From Oculina patagonica (taxonomy: Eukaryota), in assembly GCF_052425735.1 (NCBI RefSeq), contig NC_135761.1, positions 52,266,001-52,330,000 on the forward strand: a stretch of DNA of 64,000 bases, given 5' to 3'. Of this stretch, positions 23,601-54,300 are shown piece after piece. The notes beneath the pieces are model-generated. The model was not told the origin of the DNA. It saw nothing but the letters and a program-made list of their open reading frames with translations, and did not search any database. The translations under genes were made by a program, and so were the position numbers. Numbering within the stretch: the stretch's first letter is position 1; each line of letters starts with the position of its first letter.

Positions 23601-26600
23601 TCCTAATATAATCACTGGCCGAACTGACTTGGACACCAGTCTTACGCATTCATCAACTTTAAAGAAACAAAAATATCAATAAATATTTCATTCACATTTT
23701 GTTTATAATTCGCTCAGAGGGAAAATTTCATATGTCATTGACTGTCATACCTTGTGATGAAATGGGCATTGGAATGTCGACTGGCAATGGATCTTTAGTT
23801 TGCGGGTCCCAGGCTCCAGCAAACAAGCCATGAAGATGGTTAGAAATATACCTTGGAAAGAAGAAGTGCAAATTGATATTAATTAACATTTTAATTCAAA
23901 ATTTAATTAAATTAACTTGTAGCTACCTCACAACCAGTTTTTTACACATTCAAGTGTTAGAAATAATTCAGGAATGTTTAGGAATGAGTTGTTAAAATTC
24001 AAGACAAGTTCCAACATTCCTTCCAAAATGCAAATTCTCTCAAGAAAAACAATTGAAAGTTTATTAATGTTAAGCACTAACAAGAATTTAATATGCTGAC
24101 TTTGGAAACAAAGGTATTAATTAAAAGACAAACTTACCAATTAACTAGGCGCTGAGACAAGCCACGGGGAGCTTCCTGAAAACAACATGTAAATACAGTT
24201 TTTTCTACAAATGTATAATAATAAAACATGTCAGCGTAATAGATGATATACATGTAAACTATGTGACAGTACACTTGTCTGATTGACAAACCTTAAGCCC
24301 AGACTCTTTCTTGACCAGAGGGTAAGGATAAAGTGTATCAATTGGAAACTCCACGAACACAGGACCTGGAAACAGAAAATTTAATGTCTAGTAATCAACT
24401 GAGAATAACTAGTTAATAAAAATTCAATACAACAGAAAATAAAGGTATACTAAAAAGAACAAATTGTGTATCGCCATACAGCTACGATTTTAATAAACTA
24501 CATAGGCCTTTCGACCGTAACGGTCCTCTTCAGTGTAGTAACATTTGAAATGGCAACGACCAGTAACATGATATTACAGTACAGATAGGGTGTGTCGAGA
24601 TATTTATAAAATTAAGTAACGCCGGTGCGTAATGCACACAGATCAACCCTATTAAGGCCATCAGGTTCACTAGTGCGCAACTTACTTATCCAAATGGACT
24701 CTAACTCATTTAACTTCTCAGGAGAAGAATGGCTTAATACTACAAACTTAAATGTTTGGTTAAAAGTGGAATTATGGAAATCTAAATGAATTTTAAGGGC
24801 AGACTCCTTGCTGTTTCTATGCCCAGTTATGCGGTCACGCAACTTTTGGGTTGTGTTACCTACATATTGTTTTTTACAAAATATACATTCTGCCATATAA
24901 ACTAAAGATCTAGAAGTACATGAAGATTTGCAATTAATACGAAAAGAATTCCCTGTAGTGGTACTATTTACGGTGTTGATGGGATTAATTAAATTACAGG
25001 ATAAACATCGTTTAACCCCACATGGAAGTGTCCCTTTGCTCTCACCCGGTATTTTTCCAGGATAAGTGAGTAAAATAAAATAAGTGGAAAATGGTTTTTT
25101 GGCCCACTACTGGGTCTTGGATTAAGGATAGGTCATGCATGTAGCGGACTGGCCCTTGAAGTGGACAGTTTTTACAGTTGTGGCAGTGAAGTAGCATGGC
25201 TAACAGTGGTGAAAATCATAAAAGAAAGATATTTGCCACCCCTTAAAAAATTGTTATATGATGATAATCATGTTACATATAAAATATAAAATTGCACATT
25301 AATTAAAATTGGACATTGGTAACCTAGTAATTTTTACCTGGTGTGCCTGATTGTGCTATCTGAATAGCCTTTCTTAAGATGGGTACAATGTCAGCTACCC
25401 TGATGGCAAAAATTAGTTCTTATTAGTACATTTGGTATATAGCTATTACTTGCTATTTGTGCTTATTTGGGACACTGTAAATGAACTTACCCAACTAGTG
25501 GACTAATAGGAGGCTACCGTAACTTATTGGCCAGTTACAAAACAAGGCAAGAAGTTCAACTTGGGACTACAGAAAACAAATTCAGGCAGTGGCAGGATGT
25601 CCAAAAGATTTGAACCAGGGACCTATAGAAATACACTACTAAAGGCACACCTTGTTCAATGGGGCTTTATTTGCAGAGCCTCCCTGTGTTCCTATGGTAA
25701 CCAAATCTTACCTTGTAACTGTAGCACAGTATTTACATAGGGGCTTAAACAAGCTCATCTGATCAATGTCTTGTAGAGCTCCACGCCCCTGAAAAAAGAA
25801 ATAATAAAATACACTTTTGATTCTTAACATTATTTAACAATGACACAAATATCCTAAGGCTATACTGAGAAACCAATAATAAACTCATCGGCCACCTTCA
25901 GCAAAGATTACAAACCTTTAGCAACGTAGCTGCAGCCCCGCCTAACAACAGGACAGGAGATTCAGCCATTTGTGCATTCTTCACAGCTGTTACAGTATTT
26001 GTTAAACCTGAAATGGTACAAAAAAATTGACAGTCAAATCTCGTAGGCACTACTCAAATGAGATGTTCACTTGTAAGTTTTATAACAGGCTTTACCTTTT
26101 ATAGTAATTGCAACTGTTACGGAAATTGCTACACAAGAGAAGGTTCAATTGTCCAAGAGAAGTGGCTTCTCAGTGAGACACAACTGACTGTACAGTACAT
26201 ATACATGTATAGCTATATTGTAAAACAATAAGTAAACATAGAAAAACATGTCTTTACCAGGACCAGCAGTGACAGCAGCCACTCCCACAACACCTGATAA
26301 CCTTGCAACAGCATCTGCTGCAAATACAGCTGTGACCTATGAATAAAACGATGGTAAAAATATTCATATCACTTGAGATGGTCATCTAGTACCTACATAT
26401 ATCAACTTTCTCTTAGGTATACAGACATGGTCGGGTCAAAAATTGTGTCCAAAAACTCATGCATAATTGACTTAAATGGAAATTTTTACCACAAGCAAAC
26501 ATTACCTCATGTCTTGTATCAATGACTCTGATTCCAAGATTTTGACATGACACCAAAATTGGAGAAATGTGGCCGCCACAGAGTGTGAAGACAAACTTGA

Positions 26601-29600
26601 CCCCATGAGACTGTACAAGGAACAAACTTGTTAGCTGAACATTATTGAATTCTGAAAGTTATAATAATAGCCTACCACAAAACAACATAGGATCATAGGA
26701 AGTGTTTCCAACAAAAACTTAAATAAATTTACCCTGTTAATATCCAAAAACTTGTGTATAAGTATCAGTACTGTAGTTCTAAACAATTTCAACCTGCATT
26801 GTTAAGTGACTTATAAACATTTCACATCAATCAGCCTTGTGGCTTTAATAATATTAATTTTATCATTGCTAATTAATCTAGCTGGGATTATTAATAAATA
26901 ATCTTTTTTAAATAAATGAATGTGTGTCCAGCAGTAGCAATGAAATATATATATGATAATGCAAATGCGGCCTTACACTACTGAAGACCTGAAAAAATTT
27001 TTCAGGCTCTGAGCGGGAGTCGAACCCACGACCTTTGCGTTGCCAGTGCAATGCTCTACCACTGAGCTATCAAAGCCACATGAGAGCGGTCGTATATGGG
27101 TAATCCCTTTATGGTGGACATGATACTCGGCCCAAGTATATGTGAAATAAATGAATGTGTGTCCAGCAGTAGCAATGAAATATATATATGATAATGCAAA
27201 TGCGGCCTTACACTACTGAAGACCTGAAAAAATTTTTCAGGCTCTGAGCGGGAGTCGAACCCACGACCTTTGCGTTGCCAGTGCAATGCTCTACCACTGA
27301 GCTATCAAAGCCACATGAGAAAAGGGATTACCCATATACGACCGCTCTCATGTGGCTTTGATAGCTCAGTGGTAGAGCATTGCACTGGCAACGCAAAGGT
27401 CGTGGGTTCGACTCCCGCTCAGAGCCTGAAAAATTTTTTTTCAGGTCTTCAGTAGTGTAAGGCCGCATTTGCATTATCATATATATATTTCATTGCTACT
27501 GCTGGACACACATTCATTTATTTCACATATACTTGGGCCGAGTATCATGTCCACCATAAAGGGATTACCCATATACGACCGCTCTCATGTGGCTTTGATA
27601 GCTCAGTGGTAGAGCATTGCACTGGCAACGCAAAGGTCGTGGGTTCGACTCCCGCTCAGAGCCTGAAAAATTTTTTCAGGTCTTCAGTAGTGTAAGGCCG
27701 CATTTGCATTATCATATATATATTTCATTGCTACTGCTGGACACACATTCATTTATTTCACATATACTTGGGCCGAGTATCATGTCCACCATAAAGGGAT
27801 TACCCATATACGACCGCTCTCATGTGGCTTTGATAGCTCAGTGGTAGAGCATTGCACTGGCAACGCAAAGGTCGTGGGTTCGACTCCCGCTCAGAGCCTG
27901 AAAAATTTTTTCAGGTCTTCAGTAGTGTAAGGCCGCATTTGCATTATCATATATATATTTCATTGCTACTGCTGGACACACATTCATTTATTTCACATAT
28001 ACTTGGGCCGAGTATCATGTCCACCATAAAGGGATTACCCATATACGACCGCTCTCATGTGGCTTTGATAGCTCAGTGGTAGAGCATTGCACTGGCAACG
28101 CAAAGGTCGTGGGTTCGACTCCCGCTCAGAGCCTGAAAAATTTTTTCAGGTCTTCAGTAGTGTAAGGCCGCATTTGCATTATCATATATATATTTCATTG
28201 CTACTGCTGGACACACATTCATTTATTTCACATATACTTGGGCCGAGTATCATGTCCACCATAAAGGGATTACCCATATACGACCGCTCTCATGTGGCTT
28301 TGATAGCTCAGTGGTAGAGCATTGCACTGGCAACGCAAAGGTCGTGGGTTCGACTCCCGCTCAGAGCCGGAAAAATTTTTTCAGGTCTTCAGTAGTGTAA
28401 GGCCGCATTTGCATTATCATATATATATTTCATTGCTACTGCTGGACACACATTCATTTATTTCACATATACTTGGGCCGAGTATCATGTCCACCATAAA
28501 GGGATTACCCATATACGACCGCTCTCATGTGGCTTTGATAGCTCAGTGGTAGAGCATTGCACTGGCAACGCAAAGGTCGTGGGTTCGACTCCCGCTCAGA
28601 GCCTGAAAAATTTTTTCAGGTCTTCAGTAGTGTAAGGCCGCATTTGCATTATCATATATATATTTCATTGCTACTGCTGGACACACATTCATTTATTTCA
28701 CATATACTTGGGCCGAGTATCATGTCCACCATAAAGGGATTACCCATATACGACCGCTCTCATGTGGCTTTGATAGCTCAGTGGTAGAGCATTGCACTGG
28801 CAACGCAAAGGTCGTGGGTTCGACTCCCGCTCAGAGCCTGAAAAATTTTTTCAGGTCTTCCGTAGTGTAAGGCCGCATTTGCATTATCATATATATAATC
28901 TTTTTTAAATTTATGCATTTTTTAAAATTTTGCTTTTAACTACGTGTATTTCCTGGTTGATTATAAACGTAAAGTGTCTCAGAGCTACTGTCTCAGAGAA
29001 ATATTTCATCAGATCTTGGGAAGGGATCCCAGATTTCATAACATCCAAAGTGCAAAAAACCCTAAAGTTCTTACCCCTTTTTGTTTGAGAAGATTAGAAA
29101 AGTCCAATTTTCACTTTACCCCCTCCCTCTCCCCTCTCTTCTCCTCATCCTACTCCCCTCTTTGAACTTCTCTGCCTTTACCACTAGCTGTCTATCGTAC
29201 ACAGTTCACCATTAAATACATTTCAAAACACATATGGTCACTAACTTGTAAAACTTCACCAACTAACTCCCCACCATGTCTATTGCTGTTTTCATCAAGC
29301 TAGGAGTAAAAAAGGCATTATTATTGTCATATTATGAATATATGTGGCTTTGGGCCTGGAAGAATATGTCAACCTAATGTAGACTTCCATTTCCCTTTTA
29401 ACCCATGCCAGGTTTGCAGATTATTTGGATAAAGCATTTTATTTAGCAATAATTATCCCAGTTGGATTAATTCACTTAATTAAATATCACTCTGGTTACC
29501 ATGAAAGTAATGCATTTTGGCTAAAAATGCAGAAGCCACAGAAAGCTAGCTCGACCGTACCCCCTGCAAACAGGGGACAAAATCCACTTCCTTTCCGGGT

Positions 29601-51300: not shown

Positions 51301-54300
51301 GTAACCCAGGTGATGCAACCCTCCAAGTTAACTTTTTTTCTTAACGGCCCTTTGGCGACTATCTATTTAGGTGAAGTCGCCAAAAGAAATTTTGGTCGCC
51401 ACAATATAACCATCTGTAAATCTATGCACCAAAAAGCGTAAATGAAACAAAATTTTACCGCGAAATTTTTCCCTGGAAAAATTCAATGAAAGAAACAAAA
51501 AGAATAAAAAAGATCAGTTTATAAAAACCCAGAAACTTTTCAAAGTGAATCTTTTATGTACAGAGCAGTTTTTAATTTGAATTTTCACTAATGATAGTCT
51601 GCTCATCAAGCTCTAAAGCAGTCCTCTTGTTGTCGCCAGGATGGCGACTTGTTCTACAATTTAGTCGCCAGCTCCAAAGTTCTAGTCGCCATGGCGACTA
51701 AAATGGTCGCAACTTGGAGGGTTGTGATGGTCTAGCATGTATCCAGAGAGAGAAGTAGCTATAGCCATACTCTATTACTATGGAAACCAGTATGAACCAG
51801 AATTACAGTAGCATGGGACACGTACATGACACTGATCATCAACATCAAAAAAGCATGCTAGATATTTATTTCAGCTAAATGTTGATAAGGTGTAAAATAG
51901 CCAACATTGTTATTGTTATGACAGAAGACTTTGTAAAAACAAAAATTGTGAGACAATGCATTTCACTTTCAGATCCAGCTTATTACAACCAGGATGGTCT
52001 CAATGGCAGTAAAGACATTTCACTGTCTTCACTAAGACGGAAGCTTTTCACACAAGTAGAAAATAATGTCGCAGAGAAGAATCAACTGCAGATACCAACT
52101 AACATAAAGTAAGCAACACTACAGTGTGTTTATGCATTGGTTTGTGGCATGCCTATTTTGGGCATTATTTTTATTAAATTAGCACCTTTCTTGATCAGAT
52201 TTTTCTATCTCCAAGGAAAAAATAAATTTTGAACAATAACTGAAAAATTATAATTTATTGCTTGCATAGCTGGTCATAATATTATATTTTATTAACTGTT
52301 TTTGTTTTAACCTTTTTATTTGTTACAAATGTAGATCCATCTTAAAGAGTCCCAAAAGTCCTCTTTTGGTAAGTTGATAATTACCGGTAACCTAAAAGTT
52401 TCACCTAATTGTATACAGACACTTAAGTTATGCATGCCCTTTTGGTGTCAGTATTAACCTTTTCCACTGTTTTAAGACTCCTATGCATAGATTACCTCTT
52501 TTAGGCACGGGAAGAAAGTTGCTAAGCCTAGCTTTGCAAATTTTTCTACTTAAGTGGGATAGTTTTCATAGTTTTTTTGGTTAACAGAGAATTGTTGTAG
52601 TCTTACAGAATGAGCTACATGTAAGTGTTTAAACGGGTACAATCTTGTGGTAAATAAATAAAAATAAAAAAGTCACTTACTGTGCTTTTAATCATACACA
52701 GCAGCGTGCCATTTGAAAAAGCTTTTGATTTATTTTTGACAAATTTGGCTTTTGTTTGAACTGGCCAATAAAAGTGTAAGAATTGTGAGAGGCATACATG
52801 TAGTTATCAAGTTCCATGTCTGCTCTATAATATTATTGTCAACTCTGCTTTTATCACTTTTTGCACGATTGGCCAATTGAAACAGAAGTTTTCATAAAGA
52901 TGTCAAAAACTTGTCAAACATTAATAAAAACTTGTGTGATGTGGCAATGGTTCGATGCCCAGGAAGTAATATCACAGGGGACCCAAACGCTGTATTAGTT
53001 ATTCATAATCTTAAAATAAAAATGTTCTTATTTACCTGCGTTCCTGTGTCTTTTTTCACTGGTTTGGGGGCAATTTGAATTTACAAAGGCGGTTTACGTT
53101 GCGAGTTTTAAACGGTAAATCGGTCTAATAGTTAATGTTAGTAACTTGAGTTAATAACAATTGAAACTTGAGGCGCGTTGTATTGACATTGCGACAGATC
53201 GATTAGGCCTGTTTCACACTAGCGACATAACGGCATGGACATAACGACATAAAGAAAAGTTTCAATTCTTTCCTTATGTCGTTATGCTTAAATAAAATAA
53301 AAAATAAAAATAAATATGTGTTTATAGTGGTCATGCACTTAGCTTCATATCTCAACGAGATAGCTAGTTTACAGGCATGCCACTGAAACAGAGGAAACAA
53401 ATAATTTATAAATGAACATAACAGGGTTAAAAATCCCAACTGGTAGGAGGCAGACCAGTTGGCTATATACAAAGCGTGGTCGAGGATTTGAACTCGGGAC
53501 AACCGAGAAACAAATCCAGCTAGTGGCAAGGGCAGGCCTCGAACCGGTGACCTCTGGATTACAACACCAGCGCCCTAAACCACTCGGCCACGCTTGCCTC
53601 CTCCAGCTTATGTCATTATGTTCCAACTATGTCGTTATGTTATGTTGTTCACACTGGTGACATAAAACATCAATGTGAGGTGTTTTTTGCATTTGCAAGA
53701 CCTTGCCGTTATGTCGCTAGTGTGAACCAGGCCTTACCGTTTTCTTTGCTCTGATTCAAACCCTCCAAACCGGTTATATAAAAAAAAACCCACAGGAACG
53801 CAGGTAAATATGAATTTTTATTGTAAGATAATGAATATAACTAATACAGTGTTTGGGTTCCCTGTGGTAATATCAACTTTTTTATAATTTTAAGGTCACA
53901 TCAAGCCCAGTGTCTGACCAATCAACACCAAAACATGCAATGAGGAACAGACACTCAACTGCTAGCACCATGTCAAGTCCAAACATATCTCCAATAAAAC
54001 CATTTATGTCTGTCCCCGAGACACCCACCTCTGCCAGAAAGGTTTATCTTTCAAGACAGAGTATGAGCCCAATGGAGTGTTCAACAAACGTACTTGACTC
54101 ATCTGGGATTGAAATCATAGGCGATGCCCTTCCAGATCTGTCTCCAATCAAAGCAAATACTAAAACAAGCTGCAACCACATTGAGGAAATGAACCTCGCA
54201 AATGGTACGTTATGTAGCTTGCATGAAGTGTTAACCTCTATAACCAAGGAGTCTGGGGTCGACAACAATGTAACGCATCACTGGTCTTCGAGAATAGCGT

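Follow-up and report, generated by a model that had tools for sequence, protein, structure and literature searches.

Penelope-like elements (PLEs; Penelope/Poseidon, Neptune, and Naiad) leave insertions with head-to-tail partial tandem copies, an adjacent inverted and 5'-truncated copy on the 5' side, a 30- to 40-bp tail that is often present at one end only, and variable duplications at targets biased toward AT-rich sequences and microsatellites (PMC8557442, PMC11167929). A purified PLE protein cleaves and extends both target strands; its reverse transcription begins at two neighboring internal positions, and the interval between them corresponds to the tail (PMC11167929). Metazoan non-LTR retrozymes (PMC7229834; bioRxiv 10.64898/2026.07.22.740005), which are linked to PLEs, are short (170 to 400 bp), noncoding tandem units with low GC content and duplications of >4 bp. 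Their defining features are a type I hammerhead in every unit and abundant circular RNA; in one coral, retrozymes with 225/245-bp units have been described. Nonautonomous Chlamys elements, such as MRC1 of Chlamydomonas (PMC8557442), are also among the closest known systems.

The locus described here lies in a 64-kb window (i.e., the whole stretch of DNA that was analyzed), and its features are as follows.

26611 to 29245, minus strand: host intron holding the insertion, in a minus-strand gene; spliced out in an RNA contig of X32, in which 26610 is followed by 29246
26898 to 26913, no strand: left 16-bp target-site duplication, ATAATCTTTTTTAAAT; two occurrences in the window; site empty in organisms B and C
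26910 to 26945, minus strand: tail, unit positions 203 to 168, at the long end only; the first 4 nt overlap the duplication, and the right end of the array stops at 167
26914 to 27320, minus strand: inverted block, 1.7 units, 5'-truncated at unit position 28
27005 to 27076, minus strand: tRNA-like gene, anticodon GGC, inverted copy 1 (ARAGORN, Rfam)
27240 to 27311, minus strand: tRNA-like gene, inverted copy 2 (ARAGORN, Rfam)
27320 to 27321, no strand: inner junction where the inverted block meets the direct block, unit position 28 abutting 3 without filler
27321 to 28897, plus strand: direct block, 6.7 units, ending at unit position 167 in (AT)n (short end); the last 3 nt overlap the duplication
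27355 to 27426, plus strand: tRNA-like gene, direct copy 1; the T run of its unit has two extra T
27592 to 27663, plus strand: tRNA-like gene, direct copy 2; A box TAGCTCAGTGG, B box GGTTCGACTCC
27662 to 27680, plus strand: A5/T6 palindrome with T run, right after the tRNA (example; in every unit); resembles a Pol III terminator and is a 5'-truncation hot spot
27715 to 27759, plus strand: (AT)n and tail module, unit positions 160 to 204 (example; in every unit); both types of insertion end fall here
27827 to 27898, plus strand: tRNA-like gene, direct copy 3
28062 to 28133, plus strand: tRNA-like gene, direct copy 4
28297 to 28368, plus strand: tRNA-like gene, direct copy 5
28532 to 28603, plus strand: tRNA-like gene, direct copy 6
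28767 to 28838, plus strand: tRNA-like gene, direct copy 7
28895 to 28910, no strand: right 16-bp target-site duplication, same sequence

The array (26914 to 28894) is built of nine 235-bp units that are nearly identical, of which two are inverted and seven direct; each has one tRNA-like gene. This arrangement, proposed in the first-pass annotation from the sequence alone, was recovered independently by ARAGORN and Rfam (nine tRNA-like genes; Rfam, 65.9 bits each) and by TRF (period, 235 bp; 99% matches), and a repeat search returned arms of 411 nt that are 100% complementary and spaced 25 nt apart. The terminus of the inverted block was measured at unit position 28, which is the 9 nt ahead of the tRNA that had been claimed, while the first base of the direct block corresponds to unit position 3, 34 nt ahead of its tRNA. 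There is likewise no poly(A) at the array, as had been stated. The diagnostic feature of the array, which was overlooked in that annotation, is the asymmetry of its outer ends by 36 to 37 nt: the left end extends to unit position 203 and the right end to 167.

The array stems from one recent insertion; its target is duplicated, and the orthologous site in two related taxa is empty. The single 16-bp direct repeat previously noted around the whole array is perfect and occurs exactly twice in the window (0.02 expected), and the duplication overlaps the unit by 4 nt at its left copy and by 3 nt at its right copy. A search for an empty allele had been put forward as a check, and an empty site was found in these two taxa (organisms B and C), from each of which a single contig joins 26907 to 28910. 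The surrounding host intron ends in CT..AC on the plus strand (i.e., GT..AG on the minus strand). Misassembly of the array is unlikely, since short-read contigs of organism A cross both of the flank/array junctions and the same plan recurs at 25 loci.

Genome-wide, the unit family comprises about 500 copies at dozens of loci (at least 302 BLAST matches, 511 tail motifs, and 491 tRNA-arm motifs, on all large contigs; zero matches for the reversed control patterns in the motif count). The first-pass annotation had envisaged a noncoding retroelement that moves as a multimeric transcript. With duplications and inversions scored for each locus, a dispersed, noncoding family whose insertions are multimeric and inverted in their 5' part is supported: the same plan is repeated at 25 loci, and the unit contains no open reading frame (ORF) of >76 amino acids. 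At each of the 25 complete two-block loci whose two ends could be read, a minus block is followed by a plus block, the locus has its own duplication (12 to 19 bp; median, 13 bp), and one short end (~167) is paired with one long end (~204; P = 3e-8 if the ends were independent). Across loci, the short ends fall at unit positions 163 to 176 and the long ends at 196 to 213. Five further loci consist of a single block; ~80% of loci have an inverted block. Blocks at the other loci contain 0.2 to 14 units, with a maximum of 14 or more, and the short-end block is the longer one at 17 of the 25 loci (not significant). The two blocks of one locus carry common subfamily substitutions, which suggests that both derive from the same source.

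The inner junctions differ at each locus, some with filler, and are spread over the unit; those of L048, L055, and L059 are symmetric at palindromes. Because of this spread, the inversion point 9 nt ahead of the tRNA was rejected as the mark of a Pol III start site. Truncation of the 5' ends is concentrated at two places, the A/T hairpin (19 observed versus 7.4 expected; P = 8e-5) and the variable loop/T arm of the tRNA-like gene (12 versus 5.1 expected; P = 0.005). Truncation hot spots include unit positions 81 to 95.

The family prefers a quasi-palindromic target, AAAC|N12-13|(G/T)TTT, and this motif is polar, with the stronger half-site on the short-end side. The dinucleotide AC directly precedes the duplication on that side at 13 of 24 loci (background, 5.6%; P = 7.5e-11), while GT follows the duplication at 7 of 24 (P = 2.6e-4). 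The duplications themselves are 79% AT, compared with 60.5% for the window, and two loci lie inside (AAT)n microsatellites.

Each unit carries a tRNA-like gene that folds into a good cloverleaf and contains an A box, TAGCTCAGTGG, and a B box, GGTTCGACTCC. Functional tRNA-Ala has a G3:U70 identity pair and an A73 discriminator. The U:A at 3:70 and the discriminator C in place of A73 rule against a functional tRNA-Ala gene, and position 31:39 is an A-C mismatch. A run of T6-8 is found 8 nt past the tRNA in 103 of 103 aligned units. Together with the terminator-like T run that accompanies it, the tRNA-like gene has the appearance of a tRNA gene locus that was captured. No hammerhead was found in 2.5 units searched on both strands with Rfam (E <= 10), which returned only tRNA and chance matches, and inspection of the unit by eye showed no CUGANGA...GAAA core in the right arrangement. 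The predicted fold of the unit RNA is not rod-like (z = -1.46; z = -0.40 for the (AT)n and tail module), and a scan for bacterial-type promoters and terminators was empty.

We consider it probable that the array represents one retrotransposition of a nonautonomous, noncoding tandem element, with a PLE reverse transcriptase (RT)/GIY-YIG enzyme acting in trans. The geometry is of the PLE type because a 37-nt tail at one end only is combined with tandem copies and an inverted 5'-truncated copy; the family also has variable duplications at AT-rich/microsatellite targets. The Penelope-like character previously assigned to the tandem-plus-inverted copies is supported, and the one-sided 37-nt tail is added to it. 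From the architecture of the insertions, we infer an RNA intermediate for the family. The genome is rich in PLEs (860 GIY-YIG candidates), at least 20 of them occur as (-)(+) pairs with the same pairing as that of the family, and one intact ORF of 670 amino acids encodes RVT_1 plus GIY-YIG.

The family differs from PLEs in its 235-bp unit without an RT/GIY-YIG ORF, in its tRNA-like gene, and in having up to 14 or more units per block. Canonical PLEs and retrozymes carry a hammerhead, whereas the family unit, like Naiad PLEs, does not. The family shares with retrozymes a short noncoding tandem unit (235 bp), low GC content, a duplication of >4 bp (16 bp at the array), and the link to PLEs; in contrast to them, its unit has neither a ribozyme match nor a rod-like fold. 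It resembles a retrozyme without the ribozyme. Chlamys elements are green-algal and, unlike the family, have no tRNA-like gene. A literature search returned no report of a tRNA-bearing, PLE-dependent tandem element, an absence that is not proof of novelty.

Among the loci examined, there was no autonomous PLE with the (AT)n and tail module of the family. A PLE with a GIY-YIG domain 1.7 kb from a tail motif (L052) was rejected as a partner, since a small family copy harbors this 670-amino-acid RT/EN element at its (AT)n site, within its own 13- to 14-bp duplication. Eleven solitary tail-motif sites considered as partner ends all proved to be small insertions of the tRNA-unit family. The 45 nt of the (AT)n and tail module are 100% identical in a tRNA-less 147-bp repeat and are also found at the end of another insert (L036); both were discarded as partners because, although they have the module in common, they are noncoding.

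The observations can be accommodated by an ordered scheme, in which the endonuclease would nick both target strands 12 to 13 bp apart. Primed by the 3' end at the better-conserved AAAC half-site, cDNA synthesis would begin at ~167 on a tRNA-sense RNA. Because the RNA 3' of ~167 would remain single-stranded, the second target end could prime only at ~204, which would account for an inverted block with a 37-nt tail. Each of the two cDNAs would stop at a different place, often in the tRNA T arm or the A/T hairpin, and they would then be joined, sometimes via palindromic microhomology. Multimers may arise from multimeric transcripts or from repeated/rolling copying of a unit-length template. In the in vitro PLE study, the two start sites were used without evident strand coupling (PMC11167929), so the strict one-tail rule requires an extra assumption in this scheme.

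In the first-pass annotation, the tRNA-like fold would supply the Pol III promoter and/or RNase P/Z processing sites. Synthesis of the insertion template by Pol III appears disfavored, since the T6-8 run of each unit, 8 nt past the tRNA, comes before the module in which the insertions end. The unit sequence occurs in a genuine RNA data set, in which some contigs cross the T run and the unit boundary; these contigs carry no information on strand, ends, or circularity, and they may represent intron or read-through RNA. A rather unlikely reading is that the tRNA-like gene replaces the hammerhead, such that RNase P/RNase Z or other tRNA handling would cut multimers to units, and that the unit RNAs, possibly circularized, would be copied round and round by a PLE RT. 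If true, this reading would define a ribozyme-free "tRNA-retrozyme" class.

Against retrotransposition by PLE enzymes, we weighed the possibility that the family is a LINE-dependent, tRNA-derived SINE whose multimers and inversions arose by L1-style twin priming and local slippage. The family has much in common with such SINEs (i.e., a tRNA-like head with A and B boxes, nonautonomy, dispersal, and target duplications), and duplications of 12 to 19 bp at AT-rich targets are also typical of LINE endonucleases. Its combination of inversion and duplication resembles L1 twin priming, which likewise places an inverted 5' part and a direct 3' part within one duplication, and the first-pass annotation had read the geometry in this way. 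However, L1 twin priming has a variable second site and a poly(A) 3' end, whereas the family has fixed outer ends, one short and one long, that are 37 nt apart and heterotypic at 25 of 25 loci. The L1-style geometry is a misfit because both outer ends are fixed, and no poly(A) is present. The family also differs from tRNA-derived SINEs in having its T run at once after the tRNA, where it would halt a Pol III transcript before the 3' module, and in having no poly(A) or LINE-type 3' tail; the module that defines its ends is PLE-like. Furthermore, the family inserts directly as multimers, a single duplication enclosing each complete array, and ~80% of the loci have an inverted block. On this evidence, a SINE origin is improbable. 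A second tRNA-like match, beside the L041 array, has no relation to the family; it belongs to an ordinary tRNA-derived SINE that ends in a simple repeat.

A process at the DNA level, either a foldback-type transposon or the capture of extrachromosomal/repeat DNA in double-strand-break repair, is hardly plausible. Inverted arrays of tandem units inside a duplication superficially recall foldback transposons (FB and Galileo), which have inverted arrays of tandem subrepeats, and the inner junctions that are symmetric at palindromes (L048, L055, and L059) would also suit such a process. Foldback transposons, however, are moved by a transposase and have symmetric ends and duplications of fixed length, while the termini of the family are not mutual inverted copies (37-nt asymmetry), its inner junction differs from locus to locus and may include fillers, its duplications vary from 12 to 19 bp, and no transposase is associated with it. 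Random capture would not yield the same two ends and target motif at 25 loci.

Tandem tRNA gene arrays occur in several eukaryotes, and each unit has the look of a normal tRNA gene followed by a T run, but the idea of an ordinary tRNA cluster or satellite that expanded locally, its flanking repeat being fortuitous or its inversion an assembly error, is scarcely credible given the perfect 16-bp repeat exactly at the array ends (0.02 expected), the site that is empty in two taxa and the dozens of dispersed loci with a duplication each, both of which contradict local growth, the short-read contigs behind both junctions, and a gene without the G3:U70 pair expected of tRNA-Ala.

Retrotransposition with PLE enzymes in trans, the reading that we prefer, bears on both the host genome and the elements. 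About 500 Pol III-type tRNA-like gene copies are scattered in the genome, many of them intronic, and these may matter for tRNA gene annotation and local chromatin. PLE-dependent tandem elements would need no hammerhead, which would widen the definition by which "retrozymes" are found. The integration of PLEs is still largely obscure; the first in vitro work, in 2024, described two-strand cleavage and two internal starts and left out their coordination. The family is young, short, and high in copy number and preserves dozens of complete insertion events, and it thereby offers an unusually clean natural record of integration. It places three constraints on PLE integration, namely, the one-short-one-long rule (25 of 25 loci), the polar target motif, and the two truncation hot spots, which together suggest an ordered two-nick, one-RNA model.

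The array (window positions 26914 to 28894) comprises nine near-identical 235-bp units in two blocks of opposite orientation. A tRNA-like gene with the anticodon GGC was detected in each unit (65.9 bits; ARAGORN and Rfam), TRF returned a period of 235 bp with 99% matches, and the inverted and direct parts are 100% complementary across 411 nt; the nine tRNA-headed units of the first-pass annotation were thus recovered with these tools. The 16-bp direct repeat that it had placed around the whole array was also borne out, since ATAATCTTTTTTAAAT occurs exactly twice in 64 kb (0.02 expected), at 26898-26913 and 28895-28910. The unit shares 4 nt with this duplication on the left side and 3 nt on the right side. 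As had been claimed, the array has no poly(A). Its longest ORF is at most 76 aa. Its features are as follows (unit position 1 is window position 27556).

Window 26914-28894: 235-bp unit array, nine copies (two on the minus strand, seven on the plus strand)
Unit positions 37-108: tRNA-like gene
Unit positions 107-125: A5/T6 palindrome and T run, directly after the tRNA
Near unit positions 160-170: (AT)n
Unit position 203 (adjoining the left duplication) inward to 28: inverted block
Unit position 3 to 167 (adjoining the right duplication): direct block

Because the left end lies at unit position 203 and the right end at 167, the outer ends differ by 36 to 37 nt, and this asymmetry, which is absent from the first-pass annotation, is the key feature of the array. 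The T run of the first direct unit contains two extra T residues (window 27431-27440; spacing of 237 instead of 235). ARAGORN also called a tRNA-Thr (TGT) at window 53523-53598 (minus strand), below the Rfam gathering score and unrelated to the array.

The array is a recent insertion. In single short-read contigs from two other taxa, organism B (run X3) and organism C (run X5), position 26907 is joined straight to 28910; these contigs represent the orthologous site without the array, whereas the first-pass annotation had proposed to seek an empty allele in other individuals. The sole difference from a perfect empty site is a 5-bp indel in a T/A run (T7 instead of T6-AAAT-TT, leaving the site 5 bp short of what perfect excision would give), which either was present before the array inserted or took place in the other lineage. 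Contigs from organism A span both flank/array junctions (26586-26937 and 28870-29261). A spliced RNA contig (run X32) connects 26610 directly with 29246, and the intron ends are GT..AG on the minus strand; therefore, the array lies within an intron of a minus-strand gene.

The unit belongs to a dispersed family. In the 529-Mb assembly, it has at least 302 BLAST matches, on all large contigs, and copy numbers are lower bounds because some family arrays break the assembly (a 500-N gap at L017:2492-2991 begins within the plus block of an array). A 32-nt tail motif and a 30-nt anticodon-arm motif matched 511 and 491 times genome-wide, respectively, versus 0 for either reversed control pattern. About 45 family loci were readable, and we judged the insertion plan on the 25 two-block loci with both ends readable. 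A minus block precedes a plus block in all 25, with the tRNAs facing outward from the central junction and blocks of 0.2 to 14 units. Each locus has its own target-site duplication of different sequence (median, 13 bp; range, 12 to 19 bp), and the duplications are richer in A+T than the window (79% versus 60.5%). Without exception (25/25), one outer end lies at unit position 163-176 (short end) and the other at 196-213 (long end, with a 37-nt tail); loci with two short or two long ends were absent (0/25; p = 3e-8 if the ends were independent). Sixteen loci have the long end on the left and nine have it on the right; the polarity of the element is thus independent of the insertion strand. Five further loci consist of a single 5'-truncated block, and two loci are set in an (AAT)n microsatellite. 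In contrast to this family, an ordinary tRNA-derived SINE with an (ATC/ATT) simple-repeat tail directly adjoins the array at L041 (L041:5760-6090, minus strand).

The flanks of 24 loci, all oriented with the long end on the left, revealed a preferred target. The four bases preceding the duplication are A (13), A (17), A (17), and C (15 of 24), with AC directly before it in 13 of 24 loci (background, 5.6%; p = 7.5e-11), while those following it are G/T, T, and T (GT in 7 of 24; p = 2.6e-4). Given the bias on both sides, the preferred site is a quasi-palindrome, AAAC|N12-13|(G/T)TTT. From the way in which target-primed synthesis proceeds geometrically, the better-conserved half-site lies at the nick that supplies the 3' primer end for the short-end block.

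We propose that the ribonucleoprotein of a Penelope-like element (PLE) would make the first nick at AAAC, the 3' end of which would prime on (AU)n near unit position 167 of the tRNA-sense RNA (junction microhomology, 0 to 12 nt; median, about 2). Since the RNA 3' of position 167 would stay single-stranded, the second nick, 12 to 13 bp from the first, could prime only near 204 and would generate the tailed inverted block; the two cDNAs would stop at different points and then be joined. This model would account for the one-tail rule (25/25), the stronger half-site on the short-end side, and the tendency (not significant) of the short-end block to exceed the other in length (17/25). The template might be either a multimeric transcript or an RNA of unit length, linear or circular, that is copied repeatedly, and the uniform substitutions and variable A/T runs fit both options.

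PLE insertions are strongly 5' truncated and form partial tandems; an inverted 5'-truncated copy often lies directly at the 5' end, a 30- to 40-bp "tail" is often restricted to one end, and there is a microsatellite bias (Craig et al. 2021, PMC8557442). [quoted passage not shown] 2024, PMC11167929). All of these features that can be read from insertions are present in the family, in a stricter form than published. The genome contains 860 GIY-YIG candidates, at least 20 of which occur in head-to-head (-)(+) pairs 0.5 to 5 kb apart, versus about one (+)(-) pair. The presence of one identical 1371-aa open frame in ten copies suggests that a family was active recently. Degenerate fragments of a PLE endonuclease region (window 24810-25061, minus strand; L042:5503-5787, plus strand; 34 to 38% identity to the ORF of the intact PLE listed below) lie 0.7 to 1.8 kb from two family arrays, a proximity that may be due to chance, as PLEs are abundant.

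The (AT)n and the tail form a module that recurs outside the unit at the first two loci listed here; the third holds a PLE inserted at the (AT)n.

L051:2059-2391: 147-bp tandem repeat, 2.3 copies, no tRNA
L036:4836-6012: 1.18-kb non-coding insert between the unit (AT)n and the terminal tail module
L052:343-3039 (G000:C4:22575200-22580400): intact PLE with a 670-aa RVT_1 and GIY-YIG ORF (396-2408)

In the 147-bp repeat, 45 nt over the module (unit positions 157-201) are 100% identical to the unit, and the remainder is a dispersed segment of ~110 bp found at at least 40 loci; the repeat probably represents the 3' terminus of a further PLE-dependent family. The L036 insert represents either nested integration at the same hot spot or a chimeric cDNA from a second family with the same tail. 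A terminal module common to unrelated non-coding bodies is what would be expected if a reverse transcriptase acting in trans recognized this site and initiated there. The (AT)n is itself a target, as it holds foreign sequence in L036 and L051 and the intact PLE in L052. This PLE, which has its own inverted 3' fragment (401-463 versus 2627-2693), did not emerge as the autonomous partner: its insertion point is precisely the (AT)n of a small family copy that keeps its own 13- to 14-bp duplication, (A)CTCCATGTAGTTA, and it resembles the unit only in parts explained by the nesting. All "solitary" tail-motif matches proved to be small family copies; thus, neither these sites nor the L052 PLE yielded an autonomous element with the module.

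The inner junction differs at every locus (blunt, with a 1- to 7-nt overlap, or with filler consisting of unit fragments or expanded T runs). Inner ends (n = 67) are non-uniform: 19 fall in unit positions 101-126, i.e., the 3' acceptor strand and A/T palindrome (7.4 expected; p = 8e-5), and 12 in positions 79-96, i.e., the variable loop, T stem, and T loop (5.1 expected; p = 0.005). Palindrome-symmetric junctions occur at L048 (83/83), L055 and L059 (107/107), and L017 (93/93). The hot spots of inner ends in the T arm would fit a folded tRNA-like template but are no proof of one. Subfamily substitutions are common to both blocks of a locus, and units within an array vary almost exclusively in A/T-run length; this being the main unit difference at all loci suggests polymerase slippage at each pass.

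RNA contigs from one genuine RNA run cover the unit without a break, including the T run and the boundary between units (summed depth, 196 to 275 versus ~80 for a host exon), although such contigs carry no strand, end, or circularity information. Some continue into sequence that flanks other loci, and their source may thus be read-through or intron RNA. In the tRNA-like gene, the A and B boxes are canonical and the cloverleaf is good. The anticodon GGC is unusual for a eukaryotic tRNA-Ala, and, with regard to tRNA-Ala identity rules, the gene lacks G3:U70, has C as the discriminator, and contains an A-C mismatch at 31:39. A T6-8 run follows within 8 nt in 103/103 aligned units; this is how a genomic tRNA gene that has a terminator of its own is laid out, unlike a SINE head. 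Pol III transcription would thus normally stop ~50 to 90 nt before the insertion-end module, which argues against the Pol III template source suggested in the first-pass annotation. Capture of a tRNA gene locus is the simplest origin; PLEs are known to take host sequences with them (PMC8557442).

Metazoan "non-LTR retrozymes" consist of short non-coding units in tandem and have a link to PLEs; they were first studied in a coral (units of 225/245 bp), and their defining traits are a type I hammerhead per unit and abundant circular RNA (PMC7229834; bioRxiv 10.64898/2026.07.22.740005). Unlike these, the 235-bp unit contains no hammerhead (Rfam, E <= 10, both strands, tRNA only), and its RNA has no rod-like fold (z = -1.46). 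It thus behaves like a non-autonomous PLE derivative and lacks the hammerhead that defines a retrozyme. That the tRNA-like gene stands in for a ribozyme seems improbable. The view of the array as a Penelope-like, non-coding, multimeric retroelement is well supported and likely correct. The element is probably a PLE-dependent tandem element that carries a tRNA-like gene and no hammerhead.
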